Source: Thalia democratica (Eukaryota). Taken from it: 64,000 bases of DNA. Shown here in pieces: positions 35,601 to 58,998 of the stretch; within the stretch, counting starts at the first letter, position 1, and each line of letters starts with the position of its first letter. The stretch is from assembly GCA_965202585.1 (NCBI GenBank), contig OZ241829.1:5518001-5582000 (forward strand), written 5' to 3'. Made by a program: the position numbers and the translations under genes. Below the pieces are notes generated by a model. The model had not been told where the DNA came from. It did no database searches and saw nothing but the letters and a program-made list of their open reading frames with translations.

Positions 35601-36154
35601 AGCATATAAAAACGTTATAAAAATCACACTAAAAATATTTTAGGTACTACTACGACAAAGGCATTATGACGAAAGTAACTAGAAAGCGGTACACATACAA
35701 ATTCAATTTCAACACAATAACTATGCTACCTTCTGTTGGTGGGAATACAAGTAACCAACACAACGATGATCACATGTATAATTACTCATTGACTAATGCT
35801 TACAACTATCATGAGTTTGTCAAGCAGTCCTTGTTAGCGAGCTCTCAAGGTTATAATACAAGCAGTATGTCTGCAGGTACGTATTTTTTTTAATTTTAGA
35901 ACTTTGTGTCTCGGTTTTTCTACAACCCTATTTTCAGTGTTGCAACTGAAACAATAAACTTTCCAACAGGCTACAAACCAAGTAGCTTCCGAGGGTATTT
36001 CCCTAGAGTAGAAAGTGACCAATTAGGAGGTATAGGAGGTAGGGAGCAAGTAGGAGTGAAAGGAGGACAAATAGGAGTAAACGGAGGACAAGTGAAGTTA
36101 TTGGAGGGCAGTACATTTTACCCACAACTTCTTAGTAAAACTGATATTAGCTGA
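26632..36154 (+). CDS. ERG: ERG/FLI1-subfamily ETS transcription factor (PNT/SAM + ETS domains), 12 coding exons, 617 aa
   Basis: Exons 26632-26818, 27656-27803, 28204-28255, 28603-28802, 29105-29262, 30568-30786, 31009-31179, 33441-33530, 33858-33959, 34283-34391, 35644-35876, 35970-36154 all have GT-AG ends and matching phases, summing to 1854 nt. Motifs [22 protein letters not shown] (PNT) and [72 protein letters not shown] match ERG/FLI1. The symbol denotes the ERG/FLI1 group; N-terminal exon boundaries are less certain. Confidence 0.92.
30242..30325 (+). other. Candidate 84-nt symmetric (phase 1-1) cassette exon of the ETS gene
   Basis: CTAG| acceptor, open frame (E)[27 protein letters not shown], strong A|GTAAGT donor; same phases as the flanking introns. 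Confidence 0.5.
30568..30786 (+). CDS. ERG: PNT (pointed/SAM) domain exon of the ETS gene
   Basis: [22 protein letters not shown]...[17 protein letters not shown]...[10 protein letters not shown]; AG/GTAAGT boundaries. Confidence 0.92.
31285..31400 (+). repeat. Short dispersed (SINE-like) repeat copy with A-rich tail
   Basis: GGTCAAGGATCTAGATACGCAAAAAGACCTCTCGGTCATCGAGT...ATGAAAAAAAAAAG; mirrored at ~58240-58355. Confidence 0.65.
31516..32260. mobile_element. ~745-bp segment present only in the left arm, with a hAT-like end
   Basis: The right arm joins TCAACAAAAAAATT directly to CTGTGCTGTT; the segment has CAGAGGCGTGTCTAG at 31533, resembling hAT termini; no second TIR or TSD found. Confidence 0.5.
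33858..35876 (+). CDS. ERG: ETS DNA-binding domain, split over exons 33858-33959, 34283-34391 and 35644-35876
   Basis: [14 protein letters not shown]...[16 protein letters not shown] and KRYTYKF signatures. Confidence 0.95.
35078..35440. mobile_element. Intronic MITE-like element with ~60-bp imperfect TIRs
   Basis: AGGTTTATACCAACGTTTCGTATGTGAGATACATTACCT... is inverted relative to ...AGGTAATGTATCTCATGTACGAAACGGTGGTATAAACCT; mirrored at 54988-55338, so it predates the duplication. Superfamily not determined. Confidence 0.75.
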
Positions 36155-37651
36155 ATATTTTGAAAACGTGTACAAAAAAGTTTATGCTTTACTTAAAAAT
36201 AGGCCAATTTAGAAAGACTTTGGATATTTCACAAGTAGTCAATTTTTTTTTCTTTTAGGAAATACTTAACTAATTACAAAATGTAGCTTTAGAAAATTAT
36301 CATGTTTTAAACTTCTCAATAAAATTGAATTTTCCTCTGTAGTTAGATGATATAGAATATTGTAAGGTATTAGACAAATTGGGTTTAATAAAAGCACAAT
36401 ACTTTTAAAACTTTTGTCGTGAATATAATCTCAACTTATAGTCCTGATGTAAACAAGTTTAAAAAGTTATTGTTTAAGTTTAAATTCTAGCTTACTTTTG
36501 TTACAAACTAAGAATTATTTCGTTTATTTAAAAGAATTTTATAGCTACTGTCAAGTTATATTCATTTCTTAAAATATTGACATGTATGCATAACTTACTA
36601 ATAGATTTGAATTTTCCTGTTCGTTTTTTTTTTTCAGATAGTAATGTGTTATACTTGTTTTAAACATAATATATTGATGACGAAGATTAAATGATTCGTT
36701 AGTTGAGTGTTTGCTAAAAAATATGTTAAAAATGTAAATTATCAAAAATATTTTTTCTTGAACTTCTAAAAACATTTTAGCTATAGGTTCATTTTATTGA
36801 CTTAATTTTTGTGCAAACTATGAAACAAATATATAACATAGTTTGTTGGTTGACCTTATGTAATTGTTTTGTCTTTAAGTTTAAATTAACATAAGTCTTC
36901 GATTTTCTTTACATATATTTAATATGTTGCTAGATAATAAATATTATGACAAATACTTTACAAAAAAAATTTTTTAATGATTAAAATAAAATCAAAACAT
37001 TTTTAAAGATACTTAAGTTATGTAAAAAAGACTTGTTATCAACAAGAATCTAAAACACTTGTTAATAAACTTTTATTTCAAAGTGATAGATACCAAAAGA
37101 TTTCTAGTTTCAATGATAAGTTGACTCCTTTGTTGATGAAAAATAAGTACACTCTAATAAATCAGTGTAATATTTGTATTTGCTAAGCGGTCAGCGTTTA
37201 TAATTTTTTTTATAACATTAAACTAATAATTTTTTTTCATTCGAAATAAAATATTTGTACTTATAAGAGTTATTCTATTTGTGTTTTATAATATATTTTA
37301 ATACATTTAATTGTCCTTTTTTAGTATGAGGTAGTCACTTTTGTAAGTCTTTATAGCTGTTAAGACTCAACTTATAACTTTAGACTTTGAAATAGTGTCG
37401 ATAAACCTGTAGTGGTCAACACTTTTTAAGGAGTCGGCGAGTAAGCAAATTTTATAGATCTTGTTTTCATTTATTTTTTTTAATTCCTTTACCCCTAACC
37501 TACCTTACCCAAACATATTAAAAGCTAATAAATAATTTTATTGTAAATTAATTTAAATAAATTATGAAAATATAAGTATTTGCTGAATCAGCATATATTA
37601 GGAGAATCCCTTAACATTTCAGAAAGACTCCATTTTTTAACTGTCGATACA

Positions 37652-38252
37652 GGAACGGGTCAAAATTGCACGACGAAAAAATCGCAAAAGGGCACAAAAT
37701 TGCACGAAAATGCTTTTGCACAAAGCCAAATTTGAAACATGGGTCACGAGTTAAAATTTTTGCACGAGTTACAATTTTGCACGGAGGGTCATTTTTGCAC
37801 GAGAGAAAATATATGAAAAAAAGCAAAAAAAAAAAAAACTAAAAGATAAATAAAATATTAAAAAGAAAAAAAATTACTGATCGAGGGTAAGGGTTAGGGG
37901 TGAAAATCATAATAAAAATGAAAATAAAAATAACTAATAAAAATTATTATTATTATTATTATTATTTAAAAAAATAAATAAAAACTAATTAATTTAAAAG
38001 AAAAAAAGCTACCGAACGAGGGTACGGGTTAGAGGTATTAGTGAAAGTAAAAAAAAACATTAACATATAAAAATAAGTTATCGACCGAGGGTAAGGGCTA
38101 AGGGTAACAGTGATAATAAAAAAACCTTAACATAAAAAAAAGTCAAAAAAAAAAATCAACTCGTGAAAAAGTTTCTCCAAGAAATTTTGTCCCCGCGTGC
38201 AATTTTGTCCCTCGTACAATTTTGTACGCTCGTGCAAATTTGACAGCTACCC
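37652..38252. mobile_element. MULE-like element (copy C)
   Basis: Perfect 9-bp TSD GTCGATACA (37643-37651 / 38253-38261); TIRs GGAACGGGTCAAAATTGCACGA / TCGTGCAAATTTGACAGCTACCC; three internal GAGGGTA(A/C)GGG(T/C)TA units. Confidence 0.9.
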
Positions 38253-38550
38253 GTCGATACATATGAAATAATGTAAGTTTAAAATCACGAAAGCCAAATA
38301 AAAACTTCGTGATAATTTACAGTATATTTTAAACGACAATAAAATTTTAGTTTATTACAGTAGCAACGCTTGGAGTTTGTTAGGAAGTGCAAAGAATTTA
38401 GAGTTATCAAAAGACTCTTAATTTGTATTTTTAGAAACTTATTTAAAAAAACAGAAATTAAATATTTACAAAAAATCATTTGTAAACTAGCGTTTATTAC
38501 AAGAAAAAATTAACAGCTTTATATTATAACTATGTTTATTTAGTTTTTAT

Positions 38551-38577
38551 GTGCTCCACCCCACGCGACGCCCCTAG
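38551..38577. mobile_element. Solo TIR remnant of the hAT MITE family
   Basis: CCACGCGACGCCCCTAG matches the right TIR of 6875-7559; decayed mirror copy at ~53311-53338. Confidence 0.45.
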
Positions 38578-39879
38578 TTGTTAATAGTTGTTTTTATGCG
38601 CAGGAAATGGCTTTTTTTTAATACATTATCAAAATATACAAACTATTCACTTTTAAATTTGTGCAGTTAAAAGTTAAGAACAATTTAATTACCTACTATA
38701 ATTTAAAACTAGTTACTGACGTTTACATAACGTTACAAATATTATCTTTCCTTAATTGTTTTATCAGTTTTTTTAATAAATTTTTAAAATGGATTTAAAA
38801 AATAAATTTACATACTTATTATGACTTTTAAAAACTTAAATGTTTTCTACGAAAAAGTTATTCTGTTTTAATTGTAAATTGACAATCATTTATAAACAGT
38901 TCAATTTAAACATAATGATCTGTATTTATTTTTTTTTAATTAGCAAATTCCTAAGAAATCTGGTTTTAGACAAACAAACTGTATGTCATTCATTATAGCA
39001 TAGTGCAAATGTAATTTTAGTTACATAAACTTAATAGTATCAACCTTTATACATTTTAAAGTAGTCTAGATAAAATACTTAATTGTTTTAAATATTTGTT
39101 TTTGTTGTATTCAGTTAATTAATATCATTTGGAAAATAAATAATTTGATATCACTCTTTACTTAAACTTTATAATCTATAGAGTAACTAAATTTTATTTC
39201 TTAAACATTAGATGAATAATAGTTTTGTCTATAAAAAAGTTACAAATCATTTAGGTAATAAACAGAAAAAAATTTGTTGTTTTGTTTAATTTTGCTTTTT
39301 ATCATTATAAAACAAACTAAAGATTTATTTATTTAATATGTTACTAATTTGTAATTAATTTCTAAGTTCAACAGTTTTTGTTTTCAGTTATGCATTTGAT
39401 TAAGTTTTTATAAATTTAACTTGTAGTTTTGAAATTTTAGGCATGGAAAAATAATAAAGTTGAAAACACTTAAAGTATTATTTAGTTTAGACCAAAGTTG
39501 TAACTAACTTATAGAGTATTATAATAGTTACTCTAATTTTAGACGGTTTAATGCAATTAAATAATGAATGCTACTTTTTAAATAAAATCAAAAACTCTGG
39601 TTTAATTATAAGTTATTTTCAGTTATTTACTGAAAAATGCTTAAACAGCTTCTTGTAAAATATATTTGTCAAATTTAAGATTTCAATAAGATAGTACTTC
39701 AATAACATAGTGATCTTTTACTTAAAATTATTGTAGCTCTGATAAAATTCCAGTATGTCTTTTGTTTTATATTACTGAGTTACTTTAAAAACGTTTTTGA
39801 AACTATTTATTTGTGTATCAAAAGTTACATACAGCCCATACATTTTTTTAGCATCTTCATTTACTCTGAAACAACAAAA

Positions 39880-40761
39880 ATGTCTGCAATGTCTTCAGAT
39901 GAGCAGTGCAAAGAATCAAACAAAATATTTGCCGAAATTTCCGACAGAAAGTTCTACCGACTGCTGGACAGAATGGATGGATTTTCATATCAAGATCCTG
40001 AATATAAAGCTGCAATGTTACCAAATAAACATTCAGAGCTTTATAAGGATGCTGAAAAGGTGTGGAATGAAATTCGTGATTCAATCTTTTCAGAGGAAGA
40101 AAAACTATCAGGAAATACTGATCAACTACAAGTAGCTAACAGAAATTCTGGTCTAGAAGAGGACTTTTCTGAACAATCTGACGATACAGAAGAAAATCGA
40201 ACTTTTGTAGATGCTCCGCTTATTAATGATGATCTAGAAGATGTTCTTCCGGTTAAAAAAGATGATGAAATTAAAGGGCTTCTCGAGTTAATTGATTTCA
40301 TAGAGAATAAAAACAATCTGACTACATCATTTGACATTATTCGGAATGAAGATGAAAATACCATCATTGGTGAAACAACAAGAAAAAAATGTACCCGGAA
40401 AATATTAGCTAAATCCAATTCAAATGTACTTTTAAAAGTAAAAGGTAATGTTAAGAAATCAGAAACAAAATTCAAAGTCAAAGCAAATTCTGCAAGAATA
40501 AATTGTGCTGATAGAAATATTAATGCAGCTACGGAAAATCGAATGACAAATCTTGACCTTGATGGTATGTTAGAGACACTTCCAAATGAAAGAAAAGATG
40601 CAGCAATTGAAGCACTCAAATACTTAGTTAGCTACTTGAAAACTAAAAACAATTGCACTATTTCTATTGACTGTTCCAAACAAAAGTATTCAGTTTTTCG
40701 AAACACTACATTGAAAAAATTGTACGAAAAAATGTCATTAAAAGCTAAGGTGACTGAATAA
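39880..40761 (+). CDS. Intronless orphan ORF, 293 aa (290 aa from the second ATG at 39889), acidic middle, basic C-terminal half
   Basis: Long open frame in ~80% AT DNA, AAAAATG context, upstream TTTTTTTAG acceptor-like site; open in both arms; no recognisable domain. Confidence 0.75.
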   Translation: MSAMSSDEQCKESNKIFAEISDRKFYRLLDRMDGFSYQDPEYKAAMLPNKHSELYKDAEKVWNEIRDSIFSEEEKLSGNTDQLQVANRNSGLEEDFSEQSDDTEENRTFVDAPLINDDLEDVLPVKKDDEIKGLLELIDFIENKNNLTTSFDIIRNEDENTIIGETTRKKCTRKILAKSNSNVLLKVKGNVKKSETKFKVKANSARINCADRNINAATENRMTNLDLDGMLETLPNERKDAAIEALKYLVSYLKTKNNCTISIDCSKQKYSVFRNTTLKKLYEKMSLKAKVTE

Positions 40762-41724
40762 ATGTTGCAAGCGCTAGACTGTTAAAAATTTTTTAATTTT
40801 ATGTTTATAAATTTGTAAGTAAAAAGTTATACTTATTCAGATAAAAATGACTGCAACAAAAAATATACAGAAACCTTTTATAACTTCTACTAGTTTTTGT
40901 TACCATGCATTAAGCATTAATTTACTCAATTGTCGATGATTTATAATCTAAGTTTTTAACTTTAATTTAACTTGAATTTTTTGTTTATGGAAGTATTTGG
41001 TTTCTTAACTTTCTTTTTATGGTTATTTTAAGGTTTCTTTTTATAACTTGTCATTGTTATATTTGAAAGATTGTACATCACTTGTGTTCGTTAAAATGTA
41101 ACATGTAATTTTAAAATTAACACAAAGTAAAATGCACATTTATATGTTGTATATATTTATGTTAACAATAAATTACAACCTGTGTAGAAAAAAACTGAAT
41201 TTTATTAAAAGTAGTAATTGAAAGTTTACAAAACTATATAAATGCATATTAAACAAAACAATTTTTTTTCTTATTAGCATATTTATTAATTATTAGTAAG
41301 ATATAAATATGATCTAAGTTTAATATTTGTATGATGATCGGGAAACATCGTTCTTATACTACAAACACCTTGTTTTTTTTATATAAACATTTACTTTTTG
41401 TTTATCCACTTCTAGCGAGAAAAATTAATGATTTGGTTTTTTTTTGTCTAATGGCTCTGTTTCATTAACAAATCTTTTTATTCGGCAGTAAAATGTAATA
41501 AATAAATTTAGTACGATTATAAATTAAACATGTTACATCTTTATCACATGTTTGCTCAACATAAATTAATATTAAAGGTTAAATTAAAGGTTAATTGAAA
41601 TTCAAAAAACGCTAAAATAAAGTATGAAAAAGGAAATGTTTTTGCTGTATTTAAATTTAAAGTTGTTTAGTACGCAGTTAGAACTTATTACGTAAACTAT
41701 TTTTTTAATTCTGTTATATTCTAT

Positions 41725-41855
41725 ACCAGTGACCGTCAAGGTGTCACTGGTGTACACTAGTGTACACTAGTGTACCAGTGTCCAATACAAACTATTTTTG
41801 GCGTGCACGAAATTTTAAGGGTACGCGAAACTCATTTAAGGGTGCACGAAATTTT
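41725..41855. repeat. Hairpin + TGTACACTAG tandem palindromes + GTGCACGAAA repeats; probable transposon end
   Basis: 9-bp stem ACCAGTGAC/GTCACTGGT (41725-41751), CTAG at 41757 and 41767, three ~19-21-bp repeats; mirrored at ~50088-50212. Confidence 0.6.
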
Positions 41856-44800
41856 GATTAACAAATTTATTTACAATTTTTCCTTAACTTGGTTTAAATT
41901 GTATTACAAACTACAACAAGTTTTTAAAAACAAAAATTTTCAAAGTTTTTTTTTTAATTTCAAAAATTGTTATTTTTTCGAACTACCTAATTAGCATAGT
42001 AAATTTTTGGAATGTACTTGTTTTTATAAACATTTGAAAGAAGTATTTTAAACGTGTATGCTATTTGAATTAGACAAACAGTATCAAAGAGATAAATAAT
42101 TCAACTAGTAATGTAATACTTTATCCTGTTAAAATCGTATTTTAAAGCACTTTACAAACAACATATGGGTTTTAAACAATTTATTTAGTCACAATCAAAT
42201 GCTGTCACATCCAAAATACATTAAAGGTAACAACATATCCGTCAGAATATATAAACTTAATCAGAAATAAAACACTTGCAAAAGTGCCGATAATAAATCT
42301 TATTTTTGTTATTATTGCTAAATTTTTGGTTTCTCATTGTTTTTAAATACAAAGTTTCGATTTAGGGAATATTCTCAAACCGGGCGGCACTTTCCCCAAA
42401 CTTTTCGGTACGGTTGCATTAAAACCTCAATGAAATTAATATTTTTATAAAAAAAAGATATTTTAATTTTCAAAACAATGCTCTGCTGTATTTTCTTCTT
42501 ATAGCTTGCATTTTACAGACTAACTCATTGCAGTTATAACAAGTCAGATCATAGCTAATTTATGAAAGGGCAAACAGCTTTGTATCAATAAGATTTTTTT
42601 GTATTTTAGCTTGGAAGCTAACACGGCTTGAAAATATTGATAAGTTTTTATTAGTATAAACATCAGTTTTGTATTCATTAAAAAAAAACAACTTGGCATT
42701 TAATATATATCATATGTAGATTATAATTTTATATATGTTAAATTAACTGATATGTGTTATAACTATAATAACTAGAAAACCCTTTACTAGATAAATTTCA
42801 AAAGTTTTAAATGTGCCTAAACTAAATTTACTGTATTTACTTTTAGCGTTTTTTGTCATGTCTGAAATAATGAAAACAAAAAGTTAACAAGAAAAGTGTT
42901 AAAAATGTTTACTATTATCATTTACTTTTCTTACGAAAATTAACATAGACCGACCGAAATCATAAATAAACTAATAAACTTTATAAAGCCTTAAACAAAA
43001 ACAAGAAAAAAAAAGTTAATGCTTGCGCGATGGTTGGTAAGTTTTAATATAAGTGATGAGATAATAAAACAAGTTGTAACAAACTAAGTCTAATTTTCAC
43101 AGTCATAGCACTTAATATTTTTTCTATAAATATTTGACACTTTTTTTATAAGATGTTATATATTTTTTTAAGGCTAGATCTAGGTCAGCGTCTGTAGATT
43201 GTTGTAGATTACGGTACAGTTTTTCTTAGAAAAAATACTCACATAAAAATGTAAATTTAAACCTTTTTTTTTAATGGGACTATTTTTTGACGCAAACTTG
43301 TAGTTAAAACATCTTTTAAAAAACTGTTTGTTATAGTTTTATTATCTTTTAAATAACTGATACGCTAGAAGCATTTTTTCAAATATTCAATAAAACTATA
43401 ATATTTTCATTAACATTTTTTAACCTAGAAATACGTCACAAGCCACATAGTTCCGGTCAGATTCGATCTGCGGGCAAGGTTTTTGATTACTACTGTATAC
43501 AAAGCTGTATAAATATTTATATTAGAATTCAATTCATCAAAACACTTTAAAAAAAAAACTTAAGCTTACTCGATTAGATTTTGAGTTTAAAAATTTTGAA
43601 CTCAAGCAGAATGTTTTAGTGGTCTTATATAACAACAACTTTGTGAATAACATTTGATTGGTGAAAGATATTTTACAAACTTAATCTGATATATACTATT
43701 TTAGTTAAGAAATGATTTACTTATTGAAAGTATGCAACTTATAGACTTATTAATTATAATTTAAAATGAATTATGTTTACTAAAAGATAAATTTGGTTTG
43801 TATATGTGTATTAGAACTGCCTGATTAAGATATCTTATTAAAAGTTTATAAACGCTAATTTTTCGAAGACTTGAGTGTTTAATGACATAAAAAACAGCCT
43901 TGTACCAATTGGAAACTATAAGAAAGACTTGTAAAATCCTCTGTAATCTTTATACACTTATTTTTTCTACTTAGAAGAGATTCATCAATGCAGAAAAAAT
44001 CAATATTTAAATTGAACAAAACTTTCTCTTATAAGAATGATCTATCAGCATAGTTTGTTAACTTGTCCAACTAAAAAGTAATTTAAATAAACCACATGTG
44101 AAAAAGCTTGTTTACTAAGCTGAACAACTAATGGTAATTTTTTTTAAATACCTGACAGTAGAGTACAATGAAAGAAAAAAGGTATAAAAGTCAAAGAGTT
44201 TGTAAATTTAAAGTAAGCCAAAATTGCTTACTTTATTTATTATTATTATCATATTATTTACTTTATTTACTAAGATTGCTAGCTACTTTTAACTCTAAAA
44301 GAAAACAATTAGGTTCGTCAATGATTGAAATGGTCTACCTATGTCTTGGTGATGAACAACTTTTTTACTAATTCCATGAACTTTAATCTATTTTGACTGC
44401 CTTCATGCCTGTCTGATGAGGATGAGTCGACAATTATTTTTAAGAGGTCTATGCTTTTTGTTACGTCATAAAGCAAGTATGTTAACCTTTTCACACATAA
44501 ATAAAAACGTTAACTAGCGTTAACTTTGTTTTTGTTTCAATAACCAAAATTATAAACATTATAATTTTGCTTACTTATTAATGTGAAATAACAACATTTA
44601 TAGTATGATTAAGAATGTAAAATGAAGTGGTTTACATTTATTTTTCCTAAAATTTAATATTCTACACTTAGTTGTTACTATGAACTTTATTTACTTTCTA
44701 TTAATAGAAAAAACCAAACTTTCTTTTTAAGTTACTGTTCACCTTATATACAGACAACACGTATACACTAGAGTGAAATTTATTAAAATCACTAATATAG

Positions 44801-45304
44801 CTAACACTTTATCAAGACATATAAATAAAAACAACATAGATAACACATTTAAGCAATCGGCTTGTGTAAAACGGAGTCTGTGAAGAAAAATAACCTAAAT
44901 AAAAAAAAAATGCTGAAGATATTTTCAACTGAACGTAAATATTTAAAAAAAATCATTATTTGTCATTCGAACTCTAAGAAATTAAATTAAAAGATAAACG
45001 TCTAAATAATCAGCACTTTTGTTTTAACAAAAAGTTACATTTGAAACTACATTCAATAAAACAAAACAATTTGTTGCAAACTGTATTGTTAATATATTTT
45101 CAAAAAATTTTATTACTTTAATTTGTTATTAGTTTAGAATAAGAAGTAATCGAAATGTAGCATAAAAACAAAATAGAAATAGAACGACTTCAGCAAATTC
45201 ATAACACACGAAGTTTACACATGGTGAAACCTAGACTGATGAAAATCAAACAAGGCAACAACAAAGTACCATGTCTCTTTTGTAGTTGTATAGATTTCTA
45301 TCAC

Positions 45305-46140
45305 TTATAAGTTTACAGGTAAATTTACGCAGGAAAACCTCGCAATATTACTTGTTGCATAACAGCTTTTTTCTGACCATTCATCGATTTCAAGGTCGTA
45401 AACCATAACTTTACCTCCGTGGCAAAAAACAAACAACTTGCTACCAACTGTGATTGCTTCGATAGCATTGCTAAACACGCTAAAACAATTTTGGTAATGT
45501 TCTATCAACAAAGTAAATACTTCAGTATTGGAATCAAAAACTTCACAATTGTTTAAACCACCAATTTGAAACAGTTTGTTTTTTACTGCAACTGATTTGT
45601 GATGGTGTCTTCTTTCAACCATACTCGGCATTCTTGACCATGTACGAGCCGCATGGTCATATGCTTCTACAGTGTTTAGTGTTACATTACCATTCCGTCC
45701 ACCAGATACGACAATTCTCCCTTCAAACACGGAACTAGCTGAAAACTTTCTTGCATCGTTCATATTGGTGATTTCTTCCCATTCATAGGTTTTCGTACTA
45801 AATTTTACACTCGTAGCTGTAGATGAAAAACTAATAGATCCGCCAACAATATAAACACTTTCCATAAACGAACAAGTGGAAAAATAGAGACAATCATCAT
45901 ACATGTCAGATATGTGTTCCCAAGCTTTAGTAAGAGGGGAGTATTTTTCAACTGGCATTATGCAATTTAAACGAAGATCAATTCCACCGAACACATAAAT
46001 TTCACCTTTAACACAAACTACTCCATAATTTTCTCGGGCTATTTTCATTCGCCGCAAATACTTCATATCACGAAATTTGGTATTCTTAATATGTTTTACT
46101 TCACTAACGGTGTTAAATGTATTTATATTTTGCCCAGTTA
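45305..46140 (-). pseudogene. 5'-truncated intronless kelch-repeat gene (near-complete beta-propeller, no BTB/BACK); possibly still translatable from ATG 46066 (253 aa)
   Basis: Repeats GEIYVFGG..VEKYSP..W, ESVYIVGG, GRIVVSGG..TVEAYD..W, NKLFQIGG and SKLFVF..G..W; the frame is open from the palindrome junction to the stop at 45305; upstream sequence is replaced by the inverted arm. Confidence 0.85.
45745..46140. other. 396-bp unique spacer (loop) of the inverted duplication
   Basis: Mirror homology TTTCAGCTAGTTCCGTGTTTGAAG begins exactly at 46141, pairing with 45744. Confidence 0.9.
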
Positions 46141-46571
46141 TTTCAGCTAGTTCCGTGTTTGAAGGAAGAATTATCGTATCTGGTGGACGGAATGGTAATG
46201 TAACACTAAACACTGTAGAAGCATATGACCATGCGGCTCGTACATGGTCAAGAATGCCGAGTATGGTTGAAAGAAGACACCATCACAAATCAGTTGCACT
46301 AAAAAACAAACTGTTTCAAATTGGTGGTTTAAACAATTGTGAAGTTTTTGATTCCAATACTGAAGTGTTTACTTTGTTGATAGAACATTACCAAAATTGT
46401 TTTAGCATGTTTAGCAATGCTATCGAAGCGATCACAGTTGGTAGCAAGTTATTTGTTTTTTGCCACGGAGGTAAAGTTATGGTTTACGACCTTGAAATCG
46501 ATGAATGGTCAGAAAAAAGCTGTTTTGCAACAAGAAATATTGCGAGGTTTTCCTGCATAAATCACCTGTGA
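46141..46571 (+). pseudogene. Inverted partial copy of the kelch gene (C-terminal ~3.5 repeats)
   Basis: SASSVFEGRIIVSGG...WSEKSCFATRNIARFSCINHL*; near-identical to the left copy, with a 1-bp deletion near the C-terminus. Confidence 0.9.
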
Positions 46572-49500
46572 ACTTATAAGTGATAGAAATCTATACAACT
46601 ACAAAAAAGACATGGTACTTTGTTGTTGCCTTGTTTGATTTTCATCAGTCTGAGCTTCACAATGTGTAAACTTCGTGTGTAATGAATTTGCTGAAGTCGT
46701 TCTATTTCTATTTTGTTTTTATGCTACATTTCGATTACTTCTTATTCTAAACTAATAACAAAATTAAAGTAATAAAATTCCTTGAAAATATATTAACAAT
46801 ACAGATTGCAACAAATTGTTTTGTTTTATTTAATGTAGTTTTAAATGCAACTTTTTGTTAAAACACAAGTGCTGATTAAATGGACGTTTATCTTTTAATT
46901 TAATTTCTTAGAGTTCGAATGACTAATAATGATTTTTTTAAATCTTTACGTTCAGTTGAAAATGTCTTCAGCATTTTTTTCTTTTATTTAGGTTATTTTT
47001 CTTCACAGACTCCGTTTTACACAAGCCGATTGCTAAAATGTGTTGTCTATGTTGTTTTTATTTATATGTCTTGATAAAGTGTTAGCTATATTAGTGATTT
47101 TAATAAATTTCACTCTAGTGTATACGTGTTGTCTGTATATAAGGTGAACAGTAACTTAAAAAGAAAGTTTGGATTTTTCTATTAATAGAAAGTAAATAAA
47201 GTTCATAGTAACAACTAAGTGTAGAATATTAAATTTTAGGAAAAATAAATGTAAACCACTTCATTTTACATTCTTAATCATACTATAAATGTTGTTATTT
47301 CACATTAATAAGTAAGCAAAATTATAATGTTTATAATTTTGGTTATTGAAACAAAAACAAAGTTAACGCTAGTTAACGTTTTTATTTATGTGTGAAAAGG
47401 TTAACATACTTGCTTTATGACGTAACAAAAAGCATGGACCTCTTAAAAATAATTGTCGACTCATCCTCATCAGACAGGCATGAAGGCAGTCAAAATAATT
47501 AAAGTTCATGGAATTAGTAAAAAAATTGTTCATCACCAAGACATAGGTAGACCATTTCAATCATTGACGAACCTAATTGTTTTCTTTTAGAGTTAAAAGT
47601 AGCTAGCAATCTTAGTAAATAAAGTAAATAATATGATAATAATAATAAATAAAGTAAGCAATTATAGCTTACTTTAAATTTACAAACTCTTTGACTTTTA
47701 TAGCTTTTTTCTTTCATTATACTCTACTGTCAGGTATTTAATTAAAATTACCATTAGTTGTTCAGCTTAGCAAACAAGCTTTTTCACTAGTGGTTTATTT
47801 AAATTACTTTTTAGTTGGACAAGTTAACAAACTATGCTGATAGATCATTCTTATAAGAGAAAGTTTTGTTCAATTTAAATATTGATTTTTTCTGCATTGA
47901 TTAATCTCTTCTAAGTAGAAAAAATAAGTGTATAAAGATTACAGAGGATTTTACAAGTCTTTCTTATTTTTCCAATTGGTACAAGGCTGTTTTTTATGTC
48001 ATTAAACACTCAAGTCTTCGAAAAATTAGCGTTTAAAAACTTTTAATAAGCTATCTTAATTAGGCAGTTCTACTACATATACAAACCAAATTTATCTTTT
48101 AGTAAACATAATTCATTTTAAATTATAATTAATAAGTCTATAAGTTGCATACTTTCAATAAGTAAATCATTTCTTAACTAAAATAGTATATATCAGATTA
48201 AGAGTTCTTGTTATCAGTTAAAGTTTGTAAAATATCATTCACCAAGCAAATGTTGTTCACAAAGTTATTTTTATATAAGACCACTAAAACATTCTCCTTG
48301 ATTTCAAAATTTTAAAACTCAAAATCTAGTCGAGTAAACTTAAGTTTTTTTTTAAAGTGTTTTGATGAATTGAATTCTAATATAAATATAAAAGCTTTGT
48401 ATACAGTAGTAATCAAAAACCTTGCCCGCAGATCGAATCTGACCCGACCGGAACTATGTGGCTTGTGACGTATTTTTAGGTTAAAAAATGTTAATGAAAA
48501 TATTACAGTTTTATCGCATGTTTGAAAAAATGCTTCTAGTGTATCAGTTATTTAAAAGATAATAAAACTACAACAAACAGTTTTTTAAAAGATGTTTTAA
48601 CTACAAGTTTGCGTCAAAAAATAGTCCCATTAAAAAAAAAGGTTTAAATTTACATTGTTATGTGAGTATTTTTTCTAAGAAAAACTGTACCGTAATCTAC
48701 AACAATCTACAGACGCTGACCTAGATCTAGTCTTATAAAAATATATAACATCTTATAAAAGAAAATTGTCAAATATTTATAGAAAAAATATTAAATGCTA
48801 TGACTGTGAAAATTATACTTAGTTTTTAACAATTTGTTTTATTATCTCATAACTTATATTAAAACTTACCAACCATCGCGCAAGCATTAACTTTTTTTTT
48901 TGTTGTTTTTGTTTAAGGCTTTATAAAGTTTATTAGTTTATTTATGATTTCGGTCGGTCTATGTTAATTTTCGTAAGAAAAGTAAATGATAATAGTAAAC
49001 ATTTTTAACACTTTTCTTGTTAACTTTTTGTTTTCATTATTTCAGACATGACAAAAAACGCTAAAAGTAAATACAATAAATTTAGTTTAGGCACATTTAA
49101 AACTTTTGAAATTTATCTAGTAAAGGGTTTTCTAGTTATTATAATTATAACACGTATCAGTTAACTTAACGTATATCAAATTATAATCTACATATGATAT
49201 ATATTGAATGCCAAGTTGTTTTTTTTTTAATGAATACAAAACTGATGTTTATACTAATAAAAACTTATCAATATTTTTCAAGCCGTGTTAGCCTCCAAGC
49301 TAAAATACAAAAAAATCTTATTGATACAAAGCTGTACAATTTTTTTTATAAGGTACAAAGCTGTTTGCCCTTTCATAAATTAGCTATGATCTGGCTTGTT
49401 ATAACTGCAATGAGTTAGTCTGTAAAATGCAAGCTATAAAAGAAAATACAGCAGGCCGTTGATTTTAAAAATAAAACCATCTTTTGTTATAAAAACATTA

Positions 49501-51151
49501 ATTTCATTGAGGTTTTTACGCAAATGTACCGAAAAGTTTGGGGAAATCACCGCCCGGTTTGAGAATATTCCCTGAATCGAAACTTTATATTTAAAACTAA
49601 TGAGAAACTATTCATTTAGCACTAAAAACGAAAATAAGACTTATTATCGGCACTTTTGCAAATGTTTAATTTCTGATTAAGTTTATATATTCTGACGGAT
49701 ATGTTGTTACTTTTAATGTACTTTAGATGTGACAGCATCTGATTGTGACTAAATAAGTTATTCAAAACTCATATGTTGTTTGTAAAGTGCTTTAGAATAC
49801 GATTTTAACAGCGTAAAGTATTACACTACTATTTGAATTATTTATCTTTTTGATACTATTTGTCTAATTCAAATAGCATACACGTTTAAAATACTTCTTT
49901 CAAATGTTTATAAAAACACGTACATTCCAAAAATTTACTATGCTAATTAGGTAGTTCGAAAAAATAACAACTTTTGAAATTAAAAAAAAAACTTTGAAAA
50001 TTTTTGTTTTTAAAAACTTGTTGTAGTTTGTAATACAATTTAAACCAAGTTTAGGAAAAATTGTAAATAAATTTATTAATCAAAATTTTGTGCACCCTTA
50101 AATGAGTTTCGCGTATCCTTAAAATTTCGTGCACGCCATAAATAGTTTGAATTGGACACTGGTACACTAGTGTACACTAGTGTGCACCAGTGACACCTTG
50201 ACGGTCACTGGTATAGAATATAACAGAATTAAAAAAATAGTTAACGTAATAAGATCTAACTGCGTACTAAACAACTTTAAATTTAAATACAGCAAAAACA
50301 TTTCCTTTTTCATACTTTATTTTAGCGTTTTTTGAATTTCAATTAACCTTTAATTTAACCTTTAATATTAATTTATGTTGAGCAAACATGTGATAAAGAT
50401 GTAACATAATTAATTTATAATCGTACTAAATTTATTTATTACATTTTACTGCCGAATATAAAGATTTGTTAATGAAACAGAAGCCATTAGACAAAAAAAA
50501 AACCAAATCATTAATTTTTCTTGCTAGAAGTGGATAAACAAAAAGTAAATGTTTATATAAAAAAAACAAGGTGTTTGTAGTATAATAACGATGTTTTCCG
50601 ATCATCATGCAAATATTAAACTTAGATCATATTTATATCTTGCTAAAAATTAGTAAATATGCTAATAAGAAAAAAAATTGTTTTATTTAATATGCATTTA
50701 TATAGTTTTGTAAACTTTCAATTACTACTTTTAATAAAATTCAGTTTTTTTTTACACAGGTTGTAATTTATTGTTAACATAAATATATACAACATATAAA
50801 TGTGCATTTTACTTTGTGTTAGTTTTAAAATTACATGTTACATTTTAACGAACACAAGTGATGTACAATATTTCAAGTATAACAATGACAAGTTATAAAC
50901 TAGTTAAGAAACCAAATACTTCCATAAACAAAAAAATCAAGTTAAATTCAAGTTAAAAACTTAGATTATAAATCATCGACAATTGAGTAAATTAATGCTT
51001 AATGCATGGTAACAAAAACTAGTAGAAGTTATAAATGTTTTTCTGTATATTTTTTGTTGCAGTCATTTTTATCTGAATAAGTATAACTTTTTACTTACAA
51101 ATTTATAAACATAAAATTTAAAAATGTTTAACAGTCTAGCGCTTGCAACAT

Positions 51152-52024
51152 TTATTCAGTCACCTTAGCTTTTAATGACATTTTTTCGTACAATTTTTTC
51201 AATGTAGTGTTTCGAAAAACTGAATACTTTTGTTTGGAACAGTCAATAGAAATAGTGCAATTGTTTTTAGTTTTCAAGTAGCTAACTAAGTATTTGAGTG
51301 CTTCAATTGCTGCATCTTTTCTTTCATTTGGAAGTGTCTCTAACATACCATCAAGGTCAAGATTTGTCATTCGATTTTCCGTAGCTGCATTAATATTTCT
51401 ATCAGCACAATTTATTCTTGCAGAATTTGCTTTGACTTTTAATTTTGTTTCTGATTTCTTAACATTACCTTTTACTTTTAAAAGTACATTTGAATTGGAT
51501 TTAGCTAATATTTTCCGGGTATATTTTTTTCTTGTTGTTTCACCAATAATGGTATTTTCATCTTCATTCGGAATAATGTCAAATGATATAGTCAGATTGT
51601 TTTTATTCTCTATGAAATCAATTAATTTGAGAAGCCCTTTAATTTCATCATCTTTTTTAACCGGAAGAACATCTTCTAGATCATCATTAATAAGCGGAGC
51701 ATCTACAAAAGTTCGATTTTCTTCTGTATCGTCAGATTGTTCAGAAAAGTCCTCTTCTAGACCAGAATTTCTGTTAGCTACTTGTAGTTGATCAGTATTT
51801 CCTGATAGTTTTTCTTCCTCTGAAAAGATTGAGTCACGAATTTCATTCCACACCTTTTCAGCATCCTTATAATGCTCTGAATGTTTATTTGGTAACATTG
51901 CAGCTTTATATTCAGGATCTTGATATGAAAATCCATCCATTCTGTCCAGCAGTCGGTAAAACTTTCTGTCGGAAATTTCGGCAAATATTTTGTTTGATTC
52001 TTTGCACTGCTCATCTGAAGACAT
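51152..52024 (-). CDS. Second copy of the orphan ORF (290 aa from MSSDEQ)
   Basis: Open frame with six amino-acid differences from the left copy; the first ATG is mutated to ATT, the second is retained. Confidence 0.7.
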   Translation of the reverse strand: MSSDEQCKESNKIFAEISDRKFYRLLDRMDGFSYQDPEYKAAMLPNKHSEHYKDAEKVWNEIRDSIFSEEEKLSGNTDQLQVANRNSGLEEDFSEQSDDTEENRTFVDAPLINDDLEDVLPVKKDDEIKGLLKLIDFIENKNNLTISFDIIPNEDENTIIGETTRKKYTRKILAKSNSNVLLKVKGNVKKSETKLKVKANSARINCADRNINAATENRMTNLDLDGMLETLPNERKDAAIEALKYLVSYLKTKNNCTISIDCSKQKYSVFRNTTLKKLYEKMSLKAKVTE

Positions 52025-53635
52025 TGCAGAAATTTTTGTTATTTCAGAGTAAATGAAGATGCTATGAAAATGTATGGACTGTATGTAACTTTTGATACAC
52101 AAATAAATAACTTCAAAAACGTTTCAAAGTAAGTCAGTAATATAAAACAAAAGACATACCGGAATTTTATCAGAGCTATAAAAATTTCAAATAAAAGATC
52201 ACTCTTTTATTGAAATACTATGGTATTGAAATCTTAAATTTGACAAATATATTTAACAACAAGCTGTTTAAGCATCTTTTTGTAAATAACTGAACATATC
52301 TTATAAATAAACCAGAGTTTTTAATTTTATTTAAAAAGTAGCATTCATTATTTAATTGCATTAAAACCGTCTAAAATTAGACTAACTGTTATAATATTCT
52401 ATGAGTTAGTTAGTACTTTGGTCTAAACTAAACACTACTTAAAGTGTTTTCAACTTTATTATTTTTCCGTGCCTAAAATAGTTAAATTTACAAATACTTG
52501 ATCAAATGCATAACTGATAACAAAACTGTTGAACCTAGAAATGAATTACAAATTAAATAAATAAGTCTTTAGTTTATTTTATAAAATAATAAAAAGCAAA
52601 ATTTAACAACACAAAAACTATTTTGTTGTTGTTTATTACCCAAATGATTTGTAATTTTTTTTATACAAAACTACTATTTACCTAATGTTTAAGAAATAAA
52701 ATTTTAGATACTATATTGATTATAAAGTTGAAGTATAGAGTGATATCAAACTATTTATTTTCCAAATGATTTTCATTAACTGAATACAACAAAAACAAAT
52801 ACTAAAAACAATTAAATATATTATCTAGACTACTTTAAAATGTATAAACGTTTATACTATTAAGTTTATGTAACTAAAAACAACATTTGCACTATGCTAT
52901 AATGAATGACGTACAGTTTGTTTGTCTAAAGCCAGGTTTCTGTAGAATTTGATAGTTTTTAAGAAAACATTTAAATACAGATTATTTTGTTCAAATTGAA
53001 CTGTTTATAAACGATTGTCAATTTTTAATTAAAACGGAATAACCCATCCGTAGCAAACATTTAAGTGTTTGATAGTAATAATAAGTATGTAAATTCACTT
53101 TTAAAATTTTAAAAAGAAAACTAATAAAACAATTAAAGAAAGACGATGTTTGTAACGTTATGTAAATGTCAATAACTCGTTTTAAATTTTAGTAGGTAAT
53201 TAAATTGTTGTACACTTTTAACTGCACAAATTTAAAAGTAATTATTTTGTATACTCTTATAATGTATTGAAAAGAGGTCACTCCCTGGGCATAAGAACAG
53301 TTATTAACAACCAGGAGCATCGCGTGGGATAGAGCACGTAAAAAATTAATAAACATAATTATAATATAAACCTGTTATTTTTTTAATAAACGCTAGTTTA
53401 CAAATGATTTTTAGTAAGTATATTATATCTGTTATTTTAGATTACTTTTTAAAAATACAAACTAAGGGATTTTTTTGATAACTCTAAATTTTTGCACTAC
53501 CTAACAAACACCAAGCGTTGCTACTATAATAAACTACAATTTTATTGTCGTTTAATATATACTATAAATTATTACATAGTTTTTATTTGCCTTTCGTTCT
53601 AACTAACATTGTTTAATATGTTCATATGTATCGAC

Positions 53636-54074
53636 GGGTAGCTGTCAAATTTGTATGAGCGTACAAAATTTTACGAGGGACAAAATTGCTTAGAAAATAT
53701 TTTTTACGAGTTGATTTTTCTTTTTTTTATGTTTAGTTTTTTTTTATCATCACTATTAACTTTAGCCCTTACCCTCGTTCGATAACTTATTTTTAAATGT
53801 TTAATTTTTTTTACACTTTCACTGATACCTCTAACCCTTACCCTCGATCGGTAGCTTTTGATTTCTTTTATTTAATTAGTTATTTTTTATTGTTTTTTTT
53901 TATTAATAATATATTTTATTAGTTTTTTTTTTAATTTCATTTTTACTATCACTTTTACCCCTTACCTTTACCCTCGATCAGTAACTTTTTTTCTTTTTAA
54001 TGTTTTGTTTATTCATCTTTTTTTTTACACATATTTTCTCTCGTGGAAAAATGACCCTCTGTGCAAATTTGTAA
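53636..54074. mobile_element. Mirror of MULE-like copy C, truncated by a ~1.4-kb deletion
   Basis: One TIR and the TSD (TGTATCGAC, 53627-53635) are retained; the other end is fused to the ETS 3' region. Confidence 0.8.
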
Positions 54075-54270
54075 TATAACAAATATAACTAAAAAGGAAA
54101 ATTCTATATCATTGAGAAGTTTAAAACATTATAATTTTCTAAAGCTACATTTTGTAATTAGTAAAGTATTTCCTAAATTAAAAAATTGACTACTTGTGAT
54201 TTATAAGTCTTTTTAAATTGGCCTACTTTTAAATAAAGCATAAACTTTTTTGAACACGTTTTCAAAATAT

Positions 54271-57200
54271 TCAGCTAATATCAGTTGTATTAAAAAGTTG
54301 TGGGTAAAATGTACTGCCTTCCATTAACTTCACTTGTCCTCCTTTAACTCCTACTTGTCCTCCGTTAACTCCTACTTGGTCCCTACCTCCTAAATGGTCA
54401 CTTTCTACTCTAGGGAAATACCCGTATGAGTCTCGGAAACCACTTGGTTTGAAGCCTGTTGAAAAATTTATTGTTTCAGTTGCAACACTGAAAATAGGGT
54501 TGTAGAAAACCGATACACGAAGTTTCAAAATTAAAAAAATATATACGTACCTGCAGACATACTGCTTCTATTATAACCTTGAGAGCTCGCTAATAAGGAC
54601 TGCTTGGCAAACTCATGATAGTTGTAAGAATTAATATACGGGTAATTGTACATGTTATCATGATTGTGTTGGTTACTAGTATTCCCACCAACAGAAGGTA
54701 GCACAAATATTGTGTTGAAATTGAATTTGTATGTGTACCGCTTTCTGGTTACTTTCGTCATAATGCCTTTGTCGTAGTAGTACCTGAAAACATTTTTAGT
54801 GCAAATTTTATAACGTTTCTATATGCTTTATGACATTACAAGTTGTATGTTAAAGTATTAATATCTTTATATAATATAGACATCTGTATAAATTAAATAT
54901 AACTAGTTTTTTTTTTAAGTTTTGTTCAACAGCACTAGACAATTTGAATTGGAGCTAAGTATTTATTTGGTTATATAAATAAACAATAGGTTTATACCAC
55001 CGTTTCGTACATGAGATACATTACCTCATATACTCATCAGTAAAGCTAAAGTTTATTAACAATGTTTAACAGAAATTTAGAATTAGAAAATTTTGTTAGT
55101 ATTATGACGTAGTAATAATGAAAGTTTTTGTACAGCAAGTTAAGTTTGAAAAATACACTGATCTTTGAAAAGTATTGAAAGATTGTATTAGAAAAATTAT
55201 TAAACTGTTCGTGTGCGTGGTTTAATTTTAATTAAAACACTAAATCAAAATAAAATTAAGCCGCAAACACATAAGTAAAACTTTTCTGATGAGTACATAA
55301 GGTAATGTATCTCACATACGAAACGGTGGTATGAACCTTTTTTTATATAATTTAAATATATATATATATATTTAGTTATATATAATCTTGGTTAATTAAC
55401 CATTTTTTTTAAACTGTTTACACAGTAATTAACTTCATTCAAATTTACAAAACATCTTTATAGGCTAGATCGAACAAAAATATAATAATTAAAATAAAAA
55501 GTGTTGACAAATAATAATGAAAACTAAAAAAGTTATTTTACTTTTAGGGTGTGATTTTTATTTGCAAATAAAGTGAAAATTCTATAAATTTATTTTTAAA
55601 CAACTTTGGAAATCTACATAAAAATTATAAATATGTATATAGTTTTATATATTTTTACAGCTCAAAATTTTCTATGAGCATAAAACTGTTGTAGATTTTT
55701 ATTGTTAAATTTTACTTTGATCAAAATTTGTAAATAGACAAAGTTCTTCATTAACATGTTTATCTTAGTTTTGCAAAATTTACATCAAAAATAATTTTAT
55801 AACTTTGTTATTTCCTTTTTACCTCTAATCAATTTATCATCAATCAGTTAATACAACGTTTGTTCACTAAAATATATCATACATAACAAATGTTTACCTT
55901 ATATATGATCATATAAAATTAGCTATCTATATTGTGTACGTTGTATACATTTTTGTAAAACAGCAGGAGTATCACCGATTATTATTACAATATAAAGCTT
56001 ATATGTTAACCTCAAAGCTCTGCTAAGCTTTTCATAATTCATATTGGGTTTTTTCTTCTTCTCTCCCTAACTTTTTGCAACATCCTCAGGATCATGTATC
56101 TTGAACTCACCGTCTATTCCTGTTTAAATAAAGAAACTAAATTAGGTAAAAAAAATTTAGAAAAAATATTTGGATCTGATATCTTTAATTGTATGTAAGT
56201 ACTTGTGTAGTTGATAAACTTTAGTAAAATAAAATTAAGTTAGCTGAAAAAGAAATCAAGATTAGACTATTAGAAAACTTTTTCAGCAAAATAGCCTACA
56301 TAATAAGAGGGTATTTAAAAAAAAGATCATTGTACTTTTAAAAGGAAAAAGAAATAGAAATAATGTCGCATGCACTTTTATGGAATTTGTAAATAAAAAA
56401 TAGTTGCTTTAATAATAGTACAAAAACAATCAAAAATTTAATTACCTTCCCAAGCTATAGAAGATGAGTTAGACGGATCGCTCAAAAGTTCCAGTAAAAA
56501 TTGCCACAATTGTATCTGAGCATTTCCTTTGTTGCTAAATCTTCTATCTGTTTAACAAAATTGCTTTCTTTATGTTTTTGTGCAAACCAAATAAAACAAA
56601 TCGTCAAAATGAACAAATAATTTTATCATCAAGTTCAAAGTAAGATTTTAAAAGTTAATTTGAGATTTTAAGTTTAAAAAAGATAAAGAACAATAATTAT
56701 CTTAAGTTATTTTATGCTCCTATCGCTATAGAAAAACTATTTTTTTTACATACACCGTATTTATTCAAAAATAAAAGTAGTTTAGTTTTAACGTAAAAAA
56801 TTTATTTAGACAGCAAAAAATATTTAATTAGTTATACAATTTTATGGATTTTTTAAAGTAGTCTTTTTATATCAAACATACCAGTGTGTTTGAATTTAGC
56901 GTAAGCATCAACTTCCAAATCCTTGTTCAACAAATTTGCTGAACTACATTTTGTTTGTTGAGCGGTATTATCTGTTACAAAAAACATCATAAAGTGTGTA
57001 TTGGCTTTATTACATTATGTAGTTTGTTTCATTTAAACATTTCCACTTATGCAGACCACTTGTTCAATAAATCCAAAAAAAAAATTAAAGTTACTGGTGT
57101 TTTAGCGATATAAAAAAACCCAACTCAATGTGAAGCAACAAGGCACTATGTTTTTTAAAATGGGTTACAACTTGTGTTAAGTAGATATGGAAGGCAATTT

Positions 57201-58998
57201 ATAGTTTGAACATTAGTATAAAAACAAAACCTTATTAACTCAGAACTATACTAAGTAGAGTTCAATATATATTTTAATTTGATACAATGTTAGATAGATG
57301 TGTGTATATAACAGGGGCGTGTTTTGACTGGTTTCCTGTGAACCCCCTGAAAAAAATGAAAAAAAATGAAAAAACGATTCTTAGAATATCACTAAAAACG
57401 TTCTTTATTGACTTTGGTCGGTTTTTTGATAAACTTTGAATAATGAATGTTGAATTTATAACACTTAAAGGTTATAATTTTTTATAACAAAAATTCTCGT
57501 TTTTCCCCAGCTAAAATCGATTTCAAATAAAATTTTAATTGTGACGTGATAATAGGTAAAAGTTTTTAAGTACCATATTTTTTCTGGAAAACTTTTTATT
57601 ACGATTTACTAAGTCAATCATTTGAGAAGTATATATTATATTTCTACATAAGTTTGTACATATATACTTCATAATATTACTTTGTGTTTGTTAATTAACT
57701 CAGTTTAGCTAAAAAATGTAAAGGCTTTTATTTTTAACAGTTTAAATTAGTTTATTTTACAAGTTTTAGTAAGTTTTAATTTTAAAATCTTTTTAAAAAC
57801 TTTGATTTTTATATTGATCCATTGTTATAAAATACATCTTTAATTGGTTACAAATTTAGAACTTGGCTTAGTTTGTTAATGTTAATTGTTATTAATTTTT
57901 CATTTGCTCTCGTTATAATTATTAGCTTGACTATTTTGACTGGAACTATTTAACTAGGTAATTTGTTATCATTGAGCATACTTTTCTATTATTTAGACAA
58001 GTTTGTTACTAATTTTAAGTGGTTCTATTTTCTTTAGTATCTTAAGTAAAAAAGCTTTCATTCCACATGTTAGCTCCATAATGTAAGGAATTTTTCTTAC
58101 ATTGTATATAATAACAGCACAGAATTTTTTTGTTGATGTATAAATATATTTTTTTTCAAATATTTTAGTTGTAAAGTTTAATTGTCTCATTTTAGATAGA
58201 ATTTTTCATTTTAGAGTCTAAATTTTGACTGTAATTTTTTTTTTCTTTTTTTTTCATTTGTAACTCATTATAAATTCGCAACTCAATGATCGAGAAGTCT
58301 TTTTGCGTATCCAGGTCCTTAAACCAAAACATTTTGAGCAATTTTTCGTTTTTGCTCAATAAACCACTACTGTCCATTAAGCATTTAAAAGTTTTTCTGA
58401 CACACAAACAAAAACATGCGGATTTTTTATTTTTTCGTATACGTGTTATTTAAAACACTAACTGTAGTTTCCATTGACCACTCTGCTTCTCTCTACAGAA
58501 TTTTGGTAACAACTTAGGGAATTTCCCTTGCTTGAAACCGGTGTAAATGCGCTAAATCTCCGCTCAACTAGACTTTGAAGATGTGAAATTGCAGGTGATG
58601 AATTTGGAAGAAATTGTTGCTTTGTTGTTATATCTTAAACAAGTTACATTTTGTTACTTTCTTAAACTATTAAAATGCTACTACCTGTATTTTTATGCAA
58701 ACTATCTAGTTTATATAATTGTACAGTACAAAAGAACTTTTGGCTACATAACAAATTTTTTCCTATTGGAAAAAAAAATCTCAAAAACTCTTATTTACAC
58801 ATTTGCACATTAGAAGCTAAAAGTTATTAATTTTTAATTATAACTACAACTTACTTGATTTCTCAACTCCTCTCAAAAAATTCAGATGATCAACAAAAAT
58901 TCTTCCCGACTTCTCATCTTTGGTGATATCAATAAAATCTTCTTTTGTCAATTCGCACAAACTCTCCCCGACAAAACCTTCAAACAATTGTGATGTCA
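54271..58998 (-). pseudogene. 5'-truncated ERG/FLI1-like paralog with a nonsense codon in the ETS domain
   Basis: Exons 58855-58998 (half PNT), 58463-58633, 56882-56971, 56446-56547, 56011-56119, 54551-54783 and 54271-54455 retain splice sites; KRWG became KS*G (TAG at 56067-56069); N-terminal exons are absent from the window. Confidence 0.88.
54988..55338. mobile_element. Mirror copy of the intronic MITE
   Basis: Same ~60-bp TIR pair as 35078-35440. Confidence 0.7.

Follow-up and report, generated by a model that had tools for sequence, protein, structure and literature searches.

Truncation of a BACK-Kelch family member at the centre of a long palindrome in a marine animal genome

At the centre of a long inverted duplication in a marine animal genome, a Kelch gene is cut inside the first blade of its propeller, and an open reading frame is left behind. 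We lean towards the view that this ORF is young and non-functional, the 3′ end that is left of a gene from a lineage-specific BACK-Kelch family, a view to which we give somewhat better than even weight. Such a remnant would have no promoter of its own, and its frame would still be open since little time has passed after the present junction formed. Whether it is a relic of this kind or a truncated product that is maintained depends on the age of the junction.

Results

Architecture of the palindrome

The window (the whole stretch of 64,000 nucleotides that was analysed, C5:5518001-5582000) belongs to a genome of 802 Mb with about 25% G+C, and pieces of it are present in marine metagenomes. It holds an inverted duplication of 13-15 kb, which the repeat finder built into one palindrome from 44 inverted pairs. 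According to the repeat finder and direct comparison of the arms, the left arm (30638..45744; 15.1 kb) is the original copy, whose inner end holds the Kelch gene's 3′ part, and the right arm (46141..59002; 12.9 kb) is the inverted copy, with a spacer of 396 nt between them. Long inverted arms around a short spacer are also the form of the palindromes of the primate X/Y type that are maintained by gene conversion. The right arm is the shorter of the two and lacks the left-arm segments 31516-32260 and 36348-37769, while the innermost inverted pair, 45323-45744 and 46141-46562, is 98% identical and has the same 396 nt between its members.

The spacer (45745..46140, minus strand for the Kelch frame) is asymmetric and single-copy, and continues the left Kelch copy through the remainder of blade 1 and blades 2-3 into the beginning of blade 4. 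The initial annotation had described the frame as open across the spacer, and indeed its 396 nt form 132 codons with no stop. It was also right that conversion between the arms cannot repair this segment, given that blades 1-3 have no second copy outside the spacer.

The truncated Kelch frame

The minus-strand ORF at 45305..46213 has 302 aa by bacterial starts and contains ...ELAEITGQNINTFNTVSEV...; the complete open frame around it comprises 325 codons. The part derived from the parent gene (45305..46135, minus strand) amounts to 277 codons and a stop codon, with not one internal stop or frameshift, and encodes five complete blades and a blade 1 without strand B. Beyond it, at 46136..46213 (minus strand), the frame reads through into the antisense of the right arm for 24 codons that have no ATG and do not resemble the parent gene. 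Only at 46066 (cat at 46064-46066), codon 49 of the 302-codon frame, does an ATG first occur; the 47 open codons upstream of it contain none. From this ATG runs the longest ATG-initiated frame (45305..46066, minus strand), whose length of 253 aa agrees with the value first proposed, and which begins at the last strand of blade 1. On the plus strand, the right arm carries a second Kelch fragment (46141..46571), which consists of blades 4-6 only and is also open, being stop-free over 140 codons; three replacements in it are right-derived, and five codons from its end it has lost 1 nt.

By Pfam, the ORF matches Kelch_1 (E=1.4e-31) and Kelch_6 (E=6e-23), and its best relatives of solved structure are the propellers of KLHL20, KLHL17, KLHL12, KLHL3 and KEAP1 (E 1e-34 to 1e-22). 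The Pfam search gave no BTB match in the window ORF, and no BACK-like sequence was found within the window by blastn or tblastn.

An AlphaFold2 model of the 277 parent-derived residues, computed from an input of 46 family sequences together with these residues, has a pLDDT of 94 and a pTM of 0.90. It predicts five complete four-stranded blades, and a blade 1 in which strand B is reduced to a stub, strands C and D are present, and the C-terminal strand closes the blade. The ring of six blades is not closed: alignment to the paralogs places the cut within the NIVVCGG strand, and blade 1 is incomplete in the model. The ATG at 46066 corresponds to Met25 in the numbering of the model and sits at the start of strand D, the last strand of blade 1. 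Hence, the sole ATG-initiated product would be without most of blade 1, as its 253 aa are predicted to lose strand C in addition to strand B.

The parent family and its nearest paralogs

The genome contains at least 131 matches to the propeller (E-values between 1e-205 and 1e-63), most of which belong to arrays on C8 and C5. They typically lie in open frames of 465-515 codons, which have no ATG at their start and begin with a conserved ...FTEN/FTGN... motif. From 11 paralog loci we derived the structure of the intact gene: an ATG-initiated exon 1 of about 75 aa, an intron of 230-470 nt, and an exon 2 of 465-515 codons that encodes a linker, a BACK domain (E=7e-22 and 5e-21) and six Kelch repeats. 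Exon 1 of the intact paralogs has no Pfam domain; it is conserved at L013:320-661, L020:3305-3622 and other loci (M..KRNT...TRLEH.RQN...CPEFVML.KK.AF.KL...), and this N-terminal module stands in the place of the classical KLHL BTB domain. The BTB model PF00651 has 134 matches genome-wide, none of them inside the family arrays, and neither exon 1 nor exon 2 of the intact paralogs gives a BTB match. With BTB missing from both the arrays and the intact exons, the BACK-Kelch family is, by these searches, natively BTB-less. The initial annotation had attributed the lack of BTB to the truncation, a cause that falls away here, and with it goes the premise of the Cullin-3 logic behind its suggestion of a Kelch-only substrate decoy.

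By its propeller, the window copy is a member of this family: it is among the genomic matches, keeps the conserved columns, and has 45-53% amino-acid identity to intact members over the whole propeller. All that it has kept of the two-exon structure is the final 277 codons of exon 2. Its nearest copies are L002 (C5:14.82 Mb) and L003 (C5:14.97 Mb), with 87% amino-acid and 91-94% DNA identity; beyond these, the next copies are at 53% amino-acid identity, and no other family member exceeds 77% in DNA identity. No copy in the genome is closer to the window copy than 94%. In the protein database, within the 166-528 aa range, the nearest relative is 53% identical, and no near-identical intact ortholog was found there.

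Both L002 and L003 are pseudogenes, and both have TAG at an invariant Trp. L002 has 4 stops, while L003 has the shared stop, a frameshift and a 65-nt deletion. Nevertheless, the two keep the structure of the parent, with ...TRYCNQTSFNIVVCGG upstream and then the BACK domain; L002 reads ...BACK...TRYCNQTSFNIVVCGGQNINKFNTVSEV.... Among the 131 scored family matches, about 6 are short stop-free frames of 292-395 aa, so that partial, still-open copies are common in the family. Kelch copies on the unplaced contigs C107, C347 and C525, compared with C5:18.9-19.2 Mb, have the same match statistics as the chromosomal ones, and these and other unplaced contigs are probably alternative haplotigs; for the palindrome centre of the window no haplotig exists.

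The break point and the origin of the structure

Since L002 and L003 preserve the parent structure, alignment to these closest paralogs locates the break. The homology of the window to both ends at 46135/46136, inside the first blade, between the codons for VVCG and those for GQNIN (NIVVCG/GQNIN). The junction thus truncates the gene at the first blade, as had been noted; its site, given earlier as 46140/46141, is refined by five bases and lies inside the NIVVCGG strand, not before the propeller. The repeat finder puts the arm boundary at 46141, so that the inner junction is described by the interval 46135..46141, where parent homology extends to 46135 and the arm can be followed from 46136 with a 2-nt indel, or from 46141 in an ungapped comparison. 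Given that arm homology from 46136 requires only a 2-nt indel in a run of T, the join is blunt. It has no filler and no microhomology of 2 nt or more to the parent gene, the feature that the initial annotation had advised looking for. The one candidate, a 4-nt match offset by 2 nt, was discarded, as the 2-nt indel makes the join blunt.

In L003 (C5:14966639-14970466), the 3′ end of the 65-nt deletion, which arose independently, lies about 6 nt from the equivalent of the window junction (46129-46135), and both fall in the same A/T-rich GGGCAAAATATAAATA stretch. This may mark a recurrent break site, or it may be a coincidence at the level of approximately 2%.

What the window copy has lost is exon 1, the intron, BACK and one strand of blade 1. 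The flanks of L002 and L003 also match the arms, and 63999-59529 of the window, beyond the outer end of the right arm, corresponds collinearly to the region that lies 8.5-12.6 kb upstream of L002; 59529..63999 is the ancestral upstream region of the Kelch gene. As reconstructed from this collinearity, the ancestral order is the upstream region, about 8.5 kb including the 5′ part of the gene, the Kelch 3′ part, and the downstream region. Because the ancestral upstream DNA is found beyond the right arm, the right arm is an inverted copy put in the place of the gene's 5′ part. In the mechanism that we propose, the region downstream of the gene was copied in inverted orientation, and this copy would have replaced exon 1, the intron, BACK and the first propeller strand, and would have been joined blunt-ended at 46135/46136. 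The same end structure would result if a symmetric intermediate had later lost its centre by deletion, or from one-step template switching or fold-back repair. Two complete head-to-head Kelch genes, from which the centre would have been deleted in one of the two readings first offered, are not required, given where the ancestral upstream region lies.

Divergence of the arms and the age of the junction

The arms are about 97% identical over the inner 6 kb (39789..45744, mirrored at 46141-52124), 97-99% over the inner kilobases, and 87-92% further out, with about 90% over the outer 9 kb. In 100-nt windows, divergence in the inner region is fairly uniform at 2.3-2.7%, except for one block at 42100..42500 (mirror 49438-49837), where the arms differ by about 11%. 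Against the L002 locus as an outgroup, this block has 18 left-derived and 22 right-derived differences, so that both arms are equally distant. The even split indicates old arm-to-arm divergence that was spared homogenisation, and from this it follows that the palindrome already reached within 3.2 kb of its centre when the outer arms began to diverge. A recent one-shot copying of the inner 6 kb is disfavoured by this old, symmetric block. As an unconverted island, the block is also useful for dating the palindrome.

A 97% inner region with an embedded block of about 11% divergence and outer arms of about 90% identity is compatible with conversion or with a single centre-associated event. The homogenised stretch and the present junction could both stem from one such event: a centre-associated break repaired from the other arm would probably have made the junction and homogenised the inner 6 kb, at a time that would correspond to about 1.3% divergence per lineage. 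We infer this age, like the absence of function; observed are the layout of the locus and the position of its break, the structure of the parent gene, the course of identity along the arms and the counts of substitutions.

Two further features touch on the inner arms. An orphan ORF is present in both (39811-40761 on the plus strand and 51152-52102 on the minus strand), open in each and 97% identical between them. It is acidic, has about 290 aa from its ATG and is without a Pfam match; it has 9 genomic matches, most with stops, and its sole outside relatives are 5 proteins from ENA assemblies, the best at 82%. At its 5′ end it meets the outer limit (39789) of the inner 6 kb in which arm identity is high. 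Separately, a contig of the X2 run (organism B) over the right-arm Kelch fragment (46409-46606) is without the 1-nt deletion and has one left-arm state, 46451 A>G. Exchange between the arms thus appears to have had differing outcomes between individuals or species.

The inner arms also invite a reading in which the open frame is incidental: transcription through the centre would yield a long hairpin RNA, and from it small RNAs directed against the Kelch subfamily. What speaks for it is structural only, namely inverted arms of 97-99% identity (inner kilobases) around a 396-nt loop with Kelch coding sequence. The nearest possible targets, however, are the two pseudogenes at 91-94%, the rest of the family being no closer than 77% in DNA identity, and we regard this reading as very improbable.

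Selection or neutral decay

Neutral decay of the frame was simulated with the substitution spectrum and the frameshifting-indel rate (0.081 per substitution) of the non-coding arms. The probability that the frame would still be open is 0.27 at 1.3% per lineage, which is the inner-arm divergence, 0.05 at 3%, and 0.007 at 5%. The first of these values counts for a relic, as do the partial, still-open copies elsewhere in the family and the right-arm fragment, which is unable to function and yet is equally open over its 140 codons. The last applies to a junction that formed together with the palindrome, whose outer arms have diverged by about 10%, and it counts against a relic; so does the unconverted block 3.2 kb from the centre, by which the inner arms are old too.

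The low values at 3% and 5% favour the alternative that the truncated ORF is maintained. In that case, a partial propeller without BACK might be expressed from a fortuitous promoter or through a recruited 5′ exon, or the product might start at the internal ATG, and it might act as a binding module or in a dominant-negative manner on the targets of the family. We consider this unlikely, although several observations agree with it. None of the 277 codons carries a disabling mutation, compared with 3-4 such mutations in each sister pseudogene. In the arm part, 3 of the left-derived changes are nonsynonymous and 4 synonymous (one-sided P = 0.07 versus neutrality), as against 3 to 1 and the frameshifting 1-nt deletion in the right fragment. 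At family columns with at least 80% conservation, the remnant deviates at 7 of 94, resembling intact members with their mean of 6.9. Finally, the part that is retained is confidently predicted to be a propeller. The stricter proposition is that selection has kept the frame open ever since the palindrome formed, and that its product is a partial Kelch module that lacks exon 1 and BACK, or is expressed by way of a recruited 5′ exon; we hold it to be rather doubtful.

Several features weigh on the other side. Strand B of blade 1 is missing and a start at the first ATG removes strand C as well, the open codons upstream offer no other ATG, and the DNA upstream of the remnant is the antisense of the gene's own 3′ part. 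Moreover, as the family is without BTB, the Cullin-3 decoy logic fails as stated. The substitutions in the spacer, whose analysis the initial annotation had called for, are as expected under neutrality: relative to L002 and L003 where these agree, there are 14 nonsynonymous and 5 synonymous differences, for a neutral nonsynonymous share of 0.75. When replacements are polarised by the family consensus, 10 are derived in the window copy, 4 fall on the shared branch of L002 and L003, and 12 are ambiguous; 7 spacer replacements lead away from the residues preferred in the family. Pairwise NG86 dN/dS is 0.46-0.52 between the window copy and its paralogs. We rejected this as a sign of constraint, given that L002 versus L003, two pseudogenes with a shared stop that serve as the neutral control, give 0.29; low ratios therefore carry no weight here.

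We lean towards a relic because a strand is missing, there is no start, the changes in the spacer look neutral, and the dead right-arm fragment is just as open. The absence of any disabling mutation keeps the maintained product alive as an alternative.

Independent contigs

The centre was compared with contigs from two whole-genome runs (X1 and X2) and from two marine metagenomes; among the runs that contain this stretch, none is recorded as RNA. Among the contigs listed, none bridges 46136-46141, and the junction is known from the assembly, which the other contigs neither confirm nor contradict. This raises the question of whether the assembled centre is the common state, or whether the junction is an assembly error or a rare structural allele, with an untruncated gene on other chromosomes. 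Besides the lack of a bridging contig in both whole-genome sets, and of any other genome copy above 94%, one low-depth metagenome contig speaks for such an unrepresentative centre. It covers 45673-46135 at 96.8% identity, with 15 differences, and then continues for 13 letters that match the parent-like VVCG codons. It may come from an untruncated allele or ortholog, or from an L002-like paralog of another population; besides its 15 differences from the window it has at least 14 from L002. In the metagenome contigs from JGI, exact-pattern scans found neither the parent-like junction nor a conserved 22-mer 70 nt from it.

The X1 and X2 contigs over the spacer have 6-7 differences from the window per 280-290 nt, nearly all of them L002 or L003 states. 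Their switch points are 31-nt stretches common to the paralogs, and their depth is about 97, compared with about 38 for arm-specific contigs. Given these switch points and this depth, they are probably bubble-popped mixtures of the three loci; hence, although 97.6% identical to the window, they were set aside as candidates for an intact allele. A misjoin through a repeat was likewise rejected, as no sequence is common to both sides of the junction by which an assembler might have been misled. The arms, which differ by 2-12%, are both real. Furthermore, short contigs over the junction would fall outside the contigs listed. We thus judge it improbable that the assembled centre is unrepresentative.

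Discussion

Two kinds of known system bear on this locus. With the KLHL-type propellers (KLHL20, KLHL17, KLHL12, KLHL3 and KEAP1), the window copy shares the Kelch_1 and Kelch_6 repeats and a fold that is likewise predicted to be a Kelch propeller, with a C-terminal strand that closes blade 1. It differs from them in having no BTB, as do the intact paralogs, and further in having no BACK and one blade-1 strand fewer. Compared with the BACK-Kelch family of its own genome, it has the conserved columns in common, whereas everything upstream of the middle of blade 1 is here the inverted arm.

The second comparison is with primate sex-chromosome palindromes (PMC8327919). In primate X palindromes, instability is concentrated at the centres, and common deletions that span the spacer and the inner arm remove one gene copy (PMC8327919). 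The present palindrome resembles them in its arms of more than 8 kb, its short spacer, what looks like a patchy homogenisation of the arms, and a rearrangement at the centre that removed part of a gene copy. It differs in its arm identity, which reaches 99.99% in human X palindromes (PMC8327919) and here ranges from 87 to 99%, being high only in the 6 kb next to the centre, and in its host, a marine invertebrate in which C5 may be a sex chromosome or an autosome.

In a 15-kb mouse transgene palindrome, large asymmetric central deletions are described within one generation, in work cited in PMC8327919. Asymmetric central deletion (Akgun 1997) and the centre-break model (Cunningham 2003) are likewise known to us as they are cited in PMC8327919 and PMC10766186, and models for inverted copy-number variants invoke secondary end joining or break-induced replication at palindromes (PMC10766186). 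As in asymmetric central deletion, the spacer here is kept by one arm only, and the blunt junction is compatible with end joining; unlike in that model, a prior symmetric state with two full genes would be hypothetical here.

On the present evidence, the locus is most likely an ordinary young pseudogene fragment, and a new instance of the documented instability of palindrome centres, in a marine invertebrate and in a lineage-specific Kelch family. Should expression and conservation of the remnant come to light, palindrome instability would here have made a new, truncated gene, and a frame kept by selection would mean a gene born from a rearrangement at a palindrome centre inside a fast-evolving recognition family. 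A further correction concerns the premise by which these Kelch genes would be Cullin-3 adaptors minus BTB, as the family appears never to have had a BTB domain. On the reading of a young relic, which we favour, the destruction of a gene by a palindrome centre can be followed base by base, here in a large Kelch family of a marine invertebrate whose members turn over fast, and in a case that offers the structure of the parent gene, the two junctions and an identity profile with dates together.
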